DNA from: Basidiobolus meristosporus CBS 931.73
Lineage: Eukaryota; Fungi; Basidiobolomycota
Direction of reading: 5' to 3'
Assembly (NCBI GenBank): GCA_002104905.1
Contig: MCFE01000003.1
Span: forward strand, 1-64,000
Length of the DNA stretch: 64,000 bases
In this document: positions 15,989-20,251 of the stretch, piece after piece
Numbering within the stretch: position 1 is the first letter of the stretch
Layout: the number at the start of each line of letters is the position of its first letter
The notes under the pieces: model-generated
What the model was told of the DNA's origin: nothing
The model's input: only the letters and a program-made list of their open reading frames with translations
The model's database searches: none
Program-made: the position numbers and the translations under genes

Positions 15989-18900
15989 ATGGCTGAAAGA
16001 ACGGCGTTACTACTCTGGCTTTCCGTAGTATTCTATGTTGCTATTGCACCGTTGGTTAAAGCAGGTACATATTGTTTGGCACAAAGAAACCATTTCGGAA
16101 CTCTCCGTTGAACAGCGTTAAATTCCTTGCAGATCTTTTTCTAATGCAATGCCAAGTAAACTCGGAGGGGTAAGCATCTAGGACATTCATCTCAGGTATA
16201 TTATTAACTGTATCGACATCAAGGTTAAAGAATCTGCTTGCCTCTGACCGTTGCGATTTGAATACTCCAAACACACCGTGGGTGTTCCAAAAAGATTCAT
16301 GGACAATGTTTAATGGCCGTAAGTGTTATTGTCGTTCACCTATTTTGCGCCAAGAGTTTGCTAAAATAGAAATTTTCTCTAAACAGTGTGCTGCGCTGCA
16401 GACGTGCTGCGACAAACCCCAGCACAACAGGAGACATATATTGAGCTAAAACAAACAATCGGTAAAGAAAAATTAGCGCCATTCATCCCCTCAATAGACA
16501 AGGATCTTATGGTGGGAATGCCTTCTAATGACTCCTGAGTTCTCCTCAGTACTAACAACTTCTATAGACGGCCAATGTTCGCTACTCTGACGACATAATC
16601 ATCCCTTTTAGCACTGTGCTTAGCACTGAGGAGCCGATTCTGTATTTGGTTTTCTATAATGATAACCAGGCCGTTATTAGCAAAGTACCAATGGTTAAGG
16701 ATAACTCATCATTCGTTGACTCCTACCAACCTATCGATGTGCCACCAAGCACCCGCTCCATTGACTTCATCATAGATTCCTCAAGTCATGGGGTGACATG
16801 TTACAATGGGTTCGTGCTCTATCTGGATGAGTCTTACTATGAGGGCAATATCAACGACTTGTTCACAAAGAGTAAGTGGCAACTCAGCCTTATAAGAGTG
16901 ACCGTACTAATTATGCACCACAGTTTCTAATATCGCCGCATATATTTCTTTTGTATCCATCATCGTTGTTCCCTTCCTGATCCTCGTTTTCGGACGCAAC
17001 AATGTCCCATTTCCCATGTAAGTTGATAGAAGGTTAATGGATTGTGGTCTACAATGAAACTAACTTACGTGGTTACTCAGCCCAATTAACTTGCTCAAAC
17101 GTCGAAGAGATAATCGCATATCCATCGTCCTTTTCGGCATCGTAGCACAACTTGTCTTTGTATCCGCAATTGAGATCACAAAAGGACAGAACCAACTCCA
17201 AAGTCTATTCAACCTGGACCCCACTGCTGCCAAGTATACCAAGGGCATTTTTTTGATCCTGCTGCTCCTCTGGAACGGATTAATTCTCTATCCAATCTTC
17301 TTGTGCTACCAACAGTCGCATTACCTTCTTGGAAGCATCTTTGGAGTCATCGTATCCGCCGCGCTATTTATGCAATACCTAAGTCTGATCGTAGAAACCT
17401 ACTTTGTGCGAAAAGGATTTACAAAAATCACCGAGATCCTCTCATTTGTTCCGGTGGTAGCGTTTACATTAATATTGATCCTCTATTTTCTGGCGTGCAT
17501 GTTTTCAGCGAAAGCCTCTAGATCCCAAGAATCGGTGCTTGCCTATTCTTCTGATTTCCAGTACGTAAAAAACATGTTGACTACCAAGAAAATGGAGTTC
17601 CAGACAGGCAGGGCCCCGCCTGGATTCTTCACCACCATCCTCCACCCCAGCAAATATTTCAGCTACCGGAAATACAAGCATGATATTGTTCGCTATATCG
17701 AGTAAGTAGCACTAGCTTAGCAACTTCACCTGTGAGATGGCTCAACCAAGATGACTCAATCATTTTCCTTTTGCAGAACGCCCGACATGATCCACTTTAC
17801 ACTTGCCACCATCACCCTCATCATTGTGCAAGTGATGATATATCTCGTTGTTGAGCTGTACTACATTGTACAAAGCTCGGCGGCCTGCATTGTCACCGAG
17901 TTTGTTGCTATTGGCAACCAGAAGGATGGCGTGCTAGCAGAAGACATGAAGACCGCGAGCAACGTTCTTATTGCCATGAAAGCGTCCACTTTCCTAGCGG
18001 TTATACTGGGCGGATTTGGTATGGAGATCAATGAAGCAGCTGATGTGAAATTGGACTAACAAACACGCTCACTAGGGGTTATTCTTTTCTCCACCGGAAT
18101 CAAATATCGCTTCCAACGTGATCTGGTCCAACTTCGCCTAGGAAACTACGCCTTGTTTCACCATCGCAAGAGCAACGGTACCAATATGAACGATTACCTG
18201 AAGTTTTACGGCGCCGCACTAGGCAATGCCTTTTTCGCCTCCCTTGTGGTGATCATCCAACTCTTTTTGGTCTTGATTCTGATCTCGGCAGTGGTCTTGA
18301 TCGTGCCGGTGCGAAACTTCGTACTTCGCTGGCTTTTGCTATCCTTTTTCCTTCCTCTCGTCATTTCGTGGGTCACCAGTAAGGTAGTCGCGTTGATCAC
18401 CACAGTCTTCTTCATCATTCCCGGGACAAAATTCTGGCTCAAACGTCGAAATGGATTCATGCACTGGTCCTTCCTGGCCACGTTTGTGCATATTCCCAGC
18501 GGTGTCACCGGCTGGGTCGGGCGTATGATCAAGGCGTTCTTCACGATTTTCCTGTTCAGTTCTAGAGTGGATCGCAACGTGTTGCATGTCAACCTCAGAT
18601 CAAGCGATAGTGGCTACACCGCCTACCTAGGCCTGGTACGTATTCCTCAGATTCATAGTTATTGCGGAGAATAACCCGAGTCCATTTCCCTAGCTTCTCT
18701 CTGAGCACTACTACTACAACCCAATCAACATGGTGTTCCTGTGCCTGATGCTAGGGAAGACCCATCATGAGGCACCTTTGAAGATGGAGGCCAGTAGCTG
18801 GCGTAAGCTGATCAGACCACCATCCATCTTCGTGGATGACAAGGCCGATATAAATGAGGAAATGAAACCCATCACCATCATGACGGTGAGCCATGAAGGT

Positions 18901-19017
18901 CGCAGACTGATTGCCCGCAACAGATGGCATTTGGCATACACCCTGATTAACAATCCCAAGTTAAGGGATTTGCGTCGTCATGGAGAGGCCCGTTCATCCA
19001 AGAGCGAATCGGATTAA
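15989..19017 (+). CDS. STRA6-like: STRA6 / RBP_receptor-family multi-pass membrane protein with signal peptide and N-terminal ectodomain (about 10 exons)
   Basis: Spliced model: MAERTALLLWLSVVFYVAIAPLVKA (signal), an ectodomain of about 190 aa, then PIPINLLKRRRDNRISIVLFGIVAQLV, SSDFQYVKNML, YRFQRDLVQLRLG, RRNGFMHWSFLATFVHIPSGVTGWVGR...RVDRNVL...SDSGYTAYLGLLLSEHYYYNPINMVFLCLML and RRLIARNRWHLAYTLINNPKLRDLRR. The motif order matches animal STRA6. GT-AG introns were found at each junction, including a TACTAAC branch point near 16550; two 5' junctions use weaker sites. Confidence 0.85.
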
Positions 19018-19750: not shown

Positions 19751-20251
19751 TTAATTTTGAACCATAATAAGATTGGTAAGCCAGAAGTACCCTAGGTGGT
19801 TGGTACCAAACTGTAACCCAAAATCGTTCTTCGTTGTCTCATACTTGGTGGCATAAACTGCCGCATTATTGATCAGTACATCAATGTGTTCTTTATAGCC
19901 GTTGACTTCTTCAGCAGCACCACGTACCGAATCTAATGAAGCCAGGTCCAAGGTCAATGATCTTAAAATGGCGTCCACGGACTCAGGCTTGATCTTTTCT
20001 ATTGTCTTGGTAAGCGCTTCTTGTCGTCTACCCGTAAGGATTAACAGACCAGGTTTATGCTTCGCAATTGCGCGACAGCATTCAGCACCAAGCCCGCCCA
20101 AGGAGCAACCAGTGACCAGGACGATCTTCCCTTCGATTTCCTTGGGAAAGTGGGCAGCGGCTTCCTCAGCGGCAGTGTCAAATCCATAGTTTCGTGGTAT
20201 AGTGAAAGGGTTTGGTTGAATGTTTGTAAGGGTCGCTCGTTGCGCATACAT
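19751..20251 (-). pseudogene. Short-chain dehydrogenase (RDH11/12/WWOX-like SDR), 3'-truncated
   Basis: GKIVLVTGCSLGGLG, LDLASLDSVR, IDVLINNAAV and FGTNHLGYF. The ORF stops before the catalytic YxxxK, and I found no intact downstream exon. Confidence 0.7.

Follow-up and report, generated by a model that had tools for sequence, protein, structure and literature searches.

Gene structure at the locus

The window analysed, which comprises 64,000 nucleotides (positions 1 to 64,000 of contig MCFE01000003.1 of Basidiobolus meristosporus CBS 931.73), carries a gene for a membrane protein of 825 amino acids that is related to animal STRA6. The exon model was built with the guidance of the orthologue from B. 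ranarum (858 aa, P0002) and contains nine GT..AG introns of 52-75 nt each. The gene had previously been described as intact and intron-rich, and this was borne out: all ten exons are open, the complete model begins with the ATG at 15989 and ends with the TAA at 19015-19017, and the product is colinear with P0002 (59% identity over 819 aa). All features are collated in Table 1.

Table 1. Exons and protein features of the STRA6-family gene of B. meristosporus CBS 931.73 (contig MCFE01000003.1)
Feature	Positions	Strand	Residues	Content
Whole gene	15989-19017	+		10 exons, 9 introns; 825 codons + stop
Exon 1	15989-16064	+		start codon; signal peptide (MAERTALLLWLSVVFYVAIAPLVKA), hydrophobic segment at residues 5-23; donor GTACAT
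Exon 2	16133-16169	+	26-38	start of ectodomain, DLFLMQCQ (cf. ADLFLMQCQ in B. ranarum P0002)
Exon 3	16224-16318	+	39-69	N-terminal part of ectodomain with Cys/Trp
Exon 4	16387-16511	+	70-111	ectodomain; weak donor GTGGGA at 16512
Exon 5	16568-16871	+	112-212	core of predicted jelly-roll beta-sandwich (fold from the orthologous residues of P0002)
Exon 6	16924-17017	+	213-243	transmembrane helix 1 (hydropathy)
Exon 7	17081-17701	+	244-450	transmembrane helices 2-5; cytosolic loop with conserved YVK motif
Exon 8	17777-18018	+	451-531	transmembrane helices 6-7 (hydropathy)
Exon 9	18076-18635	+	532-718	transmembrane helices 8-9, intramembrane-helix region; query of the exhaustive search for relatives
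Exon 10	18694-19017	+	719-825 + stop	YYYNPINMVFLCLML, variable linker, C-terminal tail
Putative calmodulin-binding BP2-like helix	18913-18981	+	792-814	ARNRWHLAYTLINNPKLRDLRRH; aligns with residues 600-626 of the zebrafish protein and with the 5k8q_B peptide

In the deposited annotation the locus is divided into a 119-aa model, which overruns the donor of exon 4 into the intron (to 16538), and a partial "hypothetical protein" of 485 aa (P0001), which is contained exactly in the ten-exon model. The present model would correct this split; its splicing is supported by comparison between species, and its weakest point is the GTGGGA donor at 16512. The intron following exon 4 recurs at the corresponding protein position in the B. 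ranarum gene, other intron positions are likewise common to the two genes, and exon 5 is preceded by a TACTAAC branch site. A second copy in the assembly (99.4% DNA identity) has all exons open under the same model and differs by four non-synonymous and three synonymous changes. Two paralogs (P0029 and P0031) are present in the same genome.

Both motifs quoted in the preliminary description were located in frame on the plus strand within exon 10 (YYYNPINMVFLCLML within 18694-18753, RRLIARNRWHLAYTLINNPKLRDLRR at 18901-18978), the BP2-like core of the tail (ARNRW..RRH) corresponding to 18913-18981. The idea that the gene is functionally linked to a short-chain dehydrogenase lying downstream (19751-20251, minus strand) was rejected: the latter covers no more than the N-terminal 120 of 195 profile positions, it ends in a stop beyond which nothing resembles an SDR, and genes of this kind abound.

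Family membership and predicted fold

Comparison with the Pfam family RBP_receptor (PF14752) gave a score of 77.4 bits for P0001 (gathering cutoff 25, E 1.4e-21, profile positions 158-605) and of 106.8 bits for full-length P0002 (E 1.7e-30, profile positions 43-605), and full-length matches across the family had E-values from 1e-21 to 1e-46. Zebrafish STRA6 (5sy1_A) was matched by P0001 with E 2e-5, by P0002 with E 8.3e-9 and by the family profile with E 4.2e-40, the overall identity being 15-17%. By hydropathy, the 825-aa protein has a signal peptide and some nine membrane-spanning segments; the loop between TM1 and TM2 is basic, consistent with an N-terminus on the outside.

An AlphaFold model was prepared for the B. 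ranarum orthologue P0002 as a single chain (pLDDT 71.9, pTM 0.67). When this model was submitted to Foldseek, 5sy1_A was the sole match below 1e-3 (E 2.4e-10, target-normalised TM-score 0.63), and VIA-align superimposed 526 of 582 residues with Z 22.7, 5SY1 possibly having been among the structures on which AlphaFold was trained. The superposition places model residues 231-836 on chain residues 26-630 and includes BP2, and the next membrane protein after 5sy1_A scores far lower. In the ESM Atlas, only chordate STRA6-like clusters were similar (feature score 0.95, TM 0.67/0.71; next best 0.24). The P0002 model has the nine transmembrane helices and the intramembrane helix of the STRA6 fold, with the N-terminus outside and the C-terminus inside; the linker before BP2 is unconserved and of low model confidence. 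The STRA6 homology claimed in the preliminary description is thus shown by sequence and by predicted fold.

Calmodulin-type tail

The BP2 peptides of zebrafish and sheep STRA6 are experimentally defined calmodulin binders, and the zebrafish peptide binds Ca-calmodulin with a KD below 1 nM (PMC12714816). The fungal tail (ARNRWHLAYTLINNPKLRDLRRH) can be aligned with both peptides residue for residue, in agreement with the earlier proposal that it fits the calmodulin-binding helix of STRA6: 12 of 27 positions are identical to the zebrafish peptide and 13 of 32 to the sheep peptide, which equals the number of identities between the two vertebrate peptides themselves. The fungal tail is therefore a putative calmodulin-binding site. 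BP2 is also the most conserved 23-residue window of the family alignment (0.70 vs 0.45 for the transmembrane domain). No part of the family is better conserved than the tail, so what is ancestral at the core of the STRA6-like system is probably the coupling to the partner of this tail.

Ectodomain

A signal peptide and an ectodomain of roughly 190 aa, modelled as a jelly-roll in P0002, precede TM1 in the fungal protein. The preliminary description does not mention this large N-terminal ectodomain. It is common to the fungal relatives named below and absent from the Capsaspora and mollusc proteins. Residues 60-232 of the P0002 model were found by VIA-align to resemble galactose-binding-like jelly-roll domains, namely the sugar-binding domains of Fbs1/FBG3, CBM16, CBM22, CBM61 and the ligand-binding domains of Eph receptors (Z about 10-13), and the ESM Atlas gave TM values of 0.63-0.74 to beta-sandwich domains. 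A Pfam search with six fungal ectodomains returned no family even at E up to 5. When folded alone from an eight-sequence alignment, the ectodomain was predicted with a pLDDT of 59.9, a lower quality than this region has within the full-length model. As Eph ligand-binding and phage tailspike domains match the ectodomain model equally well, only its fold class is established, and the predicted domain can be called lectin- or CBM-like at the level of fold class only.

Distribution and phylogeny

Relatives were found in Mucorales, Calcarisporiella, Paraphysoderma, Capsaspora and other eukaryotes. None of the 20 representative matches was from Dikarya, in a search whose reach stops short of homologues as remote as those of animals; the loss in Dikarya suggested earlier may have taken place. 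A tree was calculated from the fungal sequences, Capsaspora and one mollusc as the sole animal sequence. In this tree the fungal sequences cluster, follow fungal taxonomy and stand apart from Capsaspora and the mollusc, with the B. meristosporus protein grouping with those of Mucoromycota and Blastocladiomycota; the pre-animal origin put forward in the preliminary description fits this arrangement. The B. meristosporus gene codes for a true STRA6/RBP_receptor family protein, vertically inherited within fungi, and the STRA6 fold predates animals.

In the literature, STRA6 is presented either as restricted to animals or as an innovation of vertebrates that is linked to RBP4 (PMC5977736, PMC3184775, PMC12714816), and a literature search returned no paper on the fungal or Capsaspora homologues. 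Automatic tags are already attached to these homologues: PF14752 assignments are precomputed, the Paraphysoderma protein is named "retinol binding protein receptor-domain-containing protein" by NCBI, and the Capsaspora protein is named "Receptor for retinol uptake STRA6" in UniRef.

Proposed function and alternative explanations

The observations as a whole are best explained, with fair though by no means full assurance, by a STRA6-family protein with ectodomain and BP2 that would act as a calmodulin-coupled ligand conduit. The predicted layout is a signal peptide followed by the jelly-roll, the nine-helix STRA6-type bundle with its intramembrane helix, and a cytosolic tail with the BP2-type helix. 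By analogy with zebrafish STRA6, the protein would form a dimer with a lipophilic outer cleft, through which a small hydrophobic ligand may be passed between the outside and the membrane without the use of energy; transport of a lipid by the fungal protein would follow the same analogy. Calmodulin on the BP2 helix would make the direction of transfer, or its rate, respond to cytosolic Ca2+, and the fused ectodomain may replace soluble RBP4 as the extracellular partner by binding either a glycan or a ligand brought by a carrier. The ligand of the fungal protein need not be a retinoid.

A more specific form of the conduit, in early-diverging fungi, would have beta-ionone-type apocarotenoids (trisporoid mating signals or retinal) as ligands, calmodulin as the gate and the ectodomain as a docking element in the manner of RBP4; it is considered distinctly improbable. 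Mating in Mucorales is driven by carotene-derived trisporic acid, and the family occurs in Mucorales and in a blastoclad. Reports of phytoene-synthase-type terpene cyclases are confined to Mucoromycotina (PMC7466969); the proteins of Basidiobolus would thus have to act on a different ligand or be supplied from outside. If this version were true, retinoid-like transport by the STRA6 fold would be older than animals.

The protein might instead be a cell-surface sensor that moves no ligand, the ectodomain reading a cell-wall or environmental glycan and the membrane domain relaying the signal to calmodulin and Ca2+ signalling. This has a real but minor chance of being correct. It would agree with the resemblance of the ectodomain model to sugar-binding and Eph receptor ligand-binding domains and with accounts of animal STRA6 in which it also signals as a receptor, by way of this tail (PMC8595884). 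The position of the tail as the most conserved part of the family points in the same direction. Against a sensor, conservation extends over the entire transmembrane domain, the helices that form the cleft included (526 residues aligned with 5SY1), and fungi are not known to have the JAK/STAT partners of animal STRA6 signalling. A decaying or non-functional gene copy, which the fragmentary deposited models (119 aa and partial 485 aa), the weak donor at 16512 and the presence of the paralogs P0029 and P0031 might suggest, is less probable still: none of the ten exons is interrupted, the product matches that of B. ranarum colinearly with 59% identity, the second copy is fully open as well, and intron positions are conserved between the two Basidiobolus species.

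The remaining explanations concern the origin and reality of the STRA6 likeness. Basidiobolus lives in amphibian guts and has reported horizontal gene gains (PMC7466969), and the family is best known from animals; host contamination or horizontal transfer from an animal is nevertheless very hard to reconcile with a gene that is surrounded by ordinary fungal genes on a fungal contig of 288 kb, has introns of 52-75 nt and a TACTAAC branch site, groups with Mucoromycota and Blastocladiomycota and not with Capsaspora or the mollusc, and shares with its fungal relatives the ectodomain that both of the latter lack. That the likeness is a chance effect of hydrophobic composition might be thought from the weak Pfam matches of single exons (E 1e-4 and 8e-7) and the identity to zebrafish STRA6 of just 15-17%, but this is refuted by the full-length Pfam E-values (1e-21 to 1e-46), by the match of the family profile to 5sy1_A (4e-40) and by a fold match (Z 22.7) that no other membrane protein approaches.

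Significance

Under the preferred reading as a calmodulin-coupled conduit, the fungal branch would represent a different answer to the need for an extracellular partner, namely a fused lectin-like domain. Several early-diverging fungal lineages as well as Capsaspora possess the STRA6 fold and the calmodulin-type tail, the latter being the best-conserved part; the retinol/RBP4 function is therefore likely to be a late specialisation. The ancestral ligand of the family becomes a question that can be addressed in the genetically tractable Mucorales, and the fungal members would allow calmodulin gating to be studied structurally in proteins from outside the vertebrates.

Comparison with known systems

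The zebrafish STRA6-calmodulin complex (5SY1) and vertebrate STRA6 in general belong to the same Pfam family as the fungal protein and are colinear with it in their helices, from TM1 through BP2 at the C-terminus. The fungal protein also conserves the NP motif that follows the intramembrane helix, as well as BP2 including the equivalents of human Y643, T644 and R655 (a correspondence derived from the numbering of the sheep peptide). Animal STRA6 lacks the signal peptide and the roughly 190-aa jelly-roll before TM1, whereas the fungal protein has both. Fungi are not known to have RBP4; extracellular partner and ligand must therefore be others than in vertebrate STRA6, and the vertebrate-specific binding of holo-RBP4 and transfer of retinol are unlikely to apply to the fungal protein.

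Animal STRA6-like/RBPR2 (STRA6L) is of the same Pfam family as well, the chordate "stra6-like" clusters being nearest in the ESM Atlas; the fungal protein differs from it by the ectodomain. Invertebrates such as amphioxus have the STRA6L type only (PMC3184775). CAOG_08692 of Capsaspora owczarzaki is a non-animal family member with the same BP2 motif (KARLRWQVAYTLLNNP); it has no ectodomain, and the tree places it with the animal sequence and not with the fungi, both being on long branches. For the ectodomain, Fbs1/FBG3 (FBA) and CBM16/CBM61, although only 9-14% identical and without detectable sequence similarity, have the same jelly-roll beta-sandwich as the predicted fungal domain (Z 10.5-12.1 over about 130-150 residues, rmsd 2.8-3.7 A).

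Gene model and deposited annotation

The gene was modelled with the full-length Basidiobolus ranarum protein P0002 as guide. The model joins 10 open segments across 9 short GT..AG introns (52-75 nt, predicted splicing) and gives 825 codons in one unbroken reading frame. The limits proposed in the preliminary description (15989 and 19017) coincide to the base with the start and stop codons of this model, and both motifs quoted there are located in exon 10. The encoded protein aligns with P0002 over 819 residues at 59% identity and with zero frame breaks, and the intron positions readable in the P0002 gene (tblastn of P0002 against its own contig) are those of the window gene.

The exon 9 translation retrieved a 100% identical 485-aa protein, P0001 (ORX63428.1/ORY08096.1, "hypothetical protein K493DRAFT_309909, partial", Basidiobolus meristosporus CBS 931.73). 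Contig MCFE01000003.1 begins with the window, and its public record splits one STRA6-like gene in two, with ~220 codons left out; exons 5 and 6 and most of exon 7 are missing from the deposited models. At 16512 the 119-aa model reads through a weak donor (GTGGGA) and enters intron 4, and the weakness of this donor is the likely reason for the split. The gene is present once within the window, and an 8.2-kb segment that takes in the gene and both neighbours is repeated in the same assembly on MCFE01001316.1 (99.4% identity); the repeat may reflect either a haplotig or a duplication of very recent date. The gene copy on MCFE01001316.1 is fully open under the 10-exon model and differs by four amino acids, all in the N-terminal half, and by three silent changes.

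A short-chain dehydrogenase fragment faces the STRA6-like gene tail to tail. It reaches a stop after no more than the N-terminal 120 of the 195 adh_short profile positions, so that either the gene is truncated or its model incomplete, probably. With this coverage, no functional link between the two is claimed.

Coordinates of the features discussed (window positions unless another contig is named; exons according to the P0002-guided model)
Feature	Position	Strand	Remark
STRA6-like gene	15989-19017	+	
Exon 1	15989-16064	+	
Exon 2	16133-16169	+	
Exon 3	16224-16318	+	
Exon 4	16387-16511	+	
Exon 5	16568-16871	+	
Exon 6	16924-17017	+	
Exon 7	17081-17701	+	
Exon 8	17777-18018	+	
Exon 9	18076-18635	+	
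Exon 10	18694-19017	+	
YVKxxL..KK motif	~17540-17600		aa 397-417
Deposited model	15989-16538		119 aa
Deposited model	17368-19017		485 aa, partial
Repeated segment	13398-21641		= MCFE01001316.1 1551-9785
Dehydrogenase fragment	19751-20251	-	
P0009 gene	L004 6001-8397		intron-less, 798 aa
P0010 gene	L005 6001-7911		intron-less, 636 aa

Family membership and predicted fold

Membership of the product in the STRA6/RBP_receptor family is established. Single exons gave weak Pfam matches only; PF14752 (RBP_receptor) matched the window-encoded P0001 with E 1.4e-21, P0002 with E 1.7e-30 (profile positions 43-605) and other family members with E 1e-15 to 1e-46, which bears out the homology to STRA6 that had been proposed from the sequence. 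Among solved structures, the sole real match was the zebrafish STRA6 chain 5sy1_A (E 8.3e-9 with P0002, 2e-5 with P0001, and 4.2e-40 with a profile of 11 family members).

The evidence for the STRA6 fold comes from a predicted model of a relative 59% identical to the window protein, namely the AlphaFold2 model of P0002 (21-sequence alignment, pLDDT 71.9, pTM 0.67). With Foldseek, 5sy1_A alone fell below E 1e-3, at E 2.4e-10 and a target-normalised TM-score of 0.63. VIA-align superimposed 526 of 582 residues (Z 22.7) and placed model residues 231-836 on 5sy1_A residues 26-630, that is, transmembrane helix (TM) 1 through the C-terminal helix; the predicted structure is STRA6-like. The nearest large ESM Atlas clusters were all chordate STRA6 or STRA6-like (feature score 0.95, TM 0.67/0.71), and the next best reached 0.24. 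Hydropathy of the window protein indicated a signal peptide, about nine membrane segments and a basic loop after TM1, which fits an N-terminus on the outside and a tail in the cytosol.

C-terminal tail

The tail of the window protein, EGRRLIARNRWHLAYTLINNPKLRDLRRH, shares 12/27 identities with the zebrafish BP2 peptide (residues 600-626, KD <1 nM for Ca-calmodulin; PMC12714816) and 13/32 with the calmodulin-binding BP2 peptide of sheep STRA6 (residues 625-656; PMC12714816), so that the helix pattern given in the preliminary description was essentially right; the zebrafish and sheep peptides are identical to one another at 12/27 positions. In the STRA6-calmodulin complex, the principal contacts are made by BP2 (PMC12714816), and 5k8q_B, a 29-residue peptide crystallised with calmodulin, was matched by the family profile (E 0.0016). 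No other 23-residue window in the alignment of 11 members is as conserved as the BP2-like segment, whose mean majority fraction is 0.70 (membrane domain 0.45, linker before the segment 0.37). Judged by its sequence, the fungal protein would bind calmodulin. Its tail Y, T and R, counted via the sheep numbering, would correspond to human Y643, T644 and R655; in Matthew-Wood syndrome, mutations occur at human T644 and R655 (PMC8595884).

In the cytosolic TM5-TM6 loop, a YVKxxL..KK motif is near-invariant across family members and lines up with zebrafish 224-YVKKILKKKK. The motif may correspond to another of the calmodulin-contacting helices of STRA6.

N-terminal jelly-roll ectodomain

The fungal proteins are extended ahead of TM1 by a signal peptide and ~190 further residues, a feature absent from the preliminary description and without a match in Pfam. 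In the full-length P0002 model, most of residues 60-230 have pLDDT 75-92 and form a beta-sandwich; the isolated ectodomain folded alone gave a poor model. The sandwich matched the sugar-binding domains of Fbs1/FBG3, CBM16 and CBM61, Eph receptor ligand-binding domains and phage tailspike receptor-binding domains (VIA-align Z 10-12.8, Foldseek probability 1.00), and the Atlas search gave the same lead. On this predicted model the fold class alone is established, and sugar binding is not part of the assignment. The ectodomain is common to Basidiobolus, Calcarisporiella, Mucorales, Paraphysoderma and one environmental clade; the Capsaspora and mollusc proteins are without it.

Distribution and origin

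An exhaustive HMMER pass with exon 9 over 1.84 billion representatives (E up to 1e-3) returned 20 proteins only, from Basidiobolus, Calcarisporiella, Phycomyces, Hesseltinella, Apophysomyces, Rhizopus, Paraphysoderma (Blastocladiomycota) and Capsaspora, the remainder being environmental eukaryotes. Dikarya were not among these 20 matches; the query also missed animal STRA6, so a very divergent homolog in Dikarya is possible. The environmental RBP_receptor proteins P0009, with the fungal-type ectodomain, and P0010, without it, are encoded on metagenome contigs with eukaryotic neighbours (Rap_GAP and BRO1; ankyrin and sulfatase) and widen the family beyond named fungi and holozoans.

In a maximum-likelihood tree of 14 sequences, with minimal animal sampling (mollusc), the named fungal proteins form one group (87/93), which fits the pre-animal origin suggested earlier. 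Inside it lie a Mucorales plus Calcarisporiella clade (98/98) and a Basidiobolus clade (100/100); Capsaspora pairs with the mollusc (99/98), both on long branches. The B. meristosporus genome holds further paralogs, P0029 and P0031, and within Basidiobolus the family comprises at least two old paralog lineages (P0029, P0031; B. ranarum P0021/P0003). The window gene and P0029 are sisters (100/99), a species-specific duplication.

Short fungal-type introns, a TACTAAC branch site, ordinary fungal neighbours on the 288-kb contig and the fungus-only ectodomain argue for vertical inheritance from an early opisthokont, and disfavour animal contamination or transfer from an animal host. A decaying pseudogene is likewise disfavoured, since the frame is unbroken throughout and the second copy is also fully open, and a chance resemblance to STRA6 is hard to reconcile with the PF14752 match of P0001, the profile match to 5sy1_A and the fold Z of 22.7.

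Prior record and proposed mechanism

Homologs have already been catalogued by automatic tags: PF14752 was precomputed on these proteins by automated pipelines, the Paraphysoderma protein is named "retinol binding protein receptor-domain-containing protein" at NCBI, and the Capsaspora protein "Receptor for retinol uptake STRA6" in UniRef. In the searchable literature, no paper was found that ties STRA6 to fungi or Capsaspora. STRA6 has been called "animal-specific" (PMC5977736) and present "in vertebrates as far back as zebrafish" (PMC12714816), with Stra6l as the sole representative in amphioxus (PMC3184775).

As to function, the main rival to ligand passage is a pure sensor or signalling role. 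The domain order, the STRA6 fold on the predicted model and the conserved BP2 sequence are shown. An apocarotenoid, e.g. a trisporoid, would be an attractive if speculative ligand for the Mucorales members; carotenoid-type terpene cyclases are reported from Mucoromycotina only (PMC7466969). By analogy with zebrafish STRA6, the protein would be a dimer whose lipophilic outer cleft lets a small hydrophobic molecule move, at no energy cost, between the exterior and the bilayer, and calmodulin on the BP2 helix would set direction or rate according to Ca2+. The architecture suggests that the fused jelly-roll would sit on the extracellular face, the place where RBP4 docks in vertebrates, and would there supply the ligand or tether the protein to a glycan.
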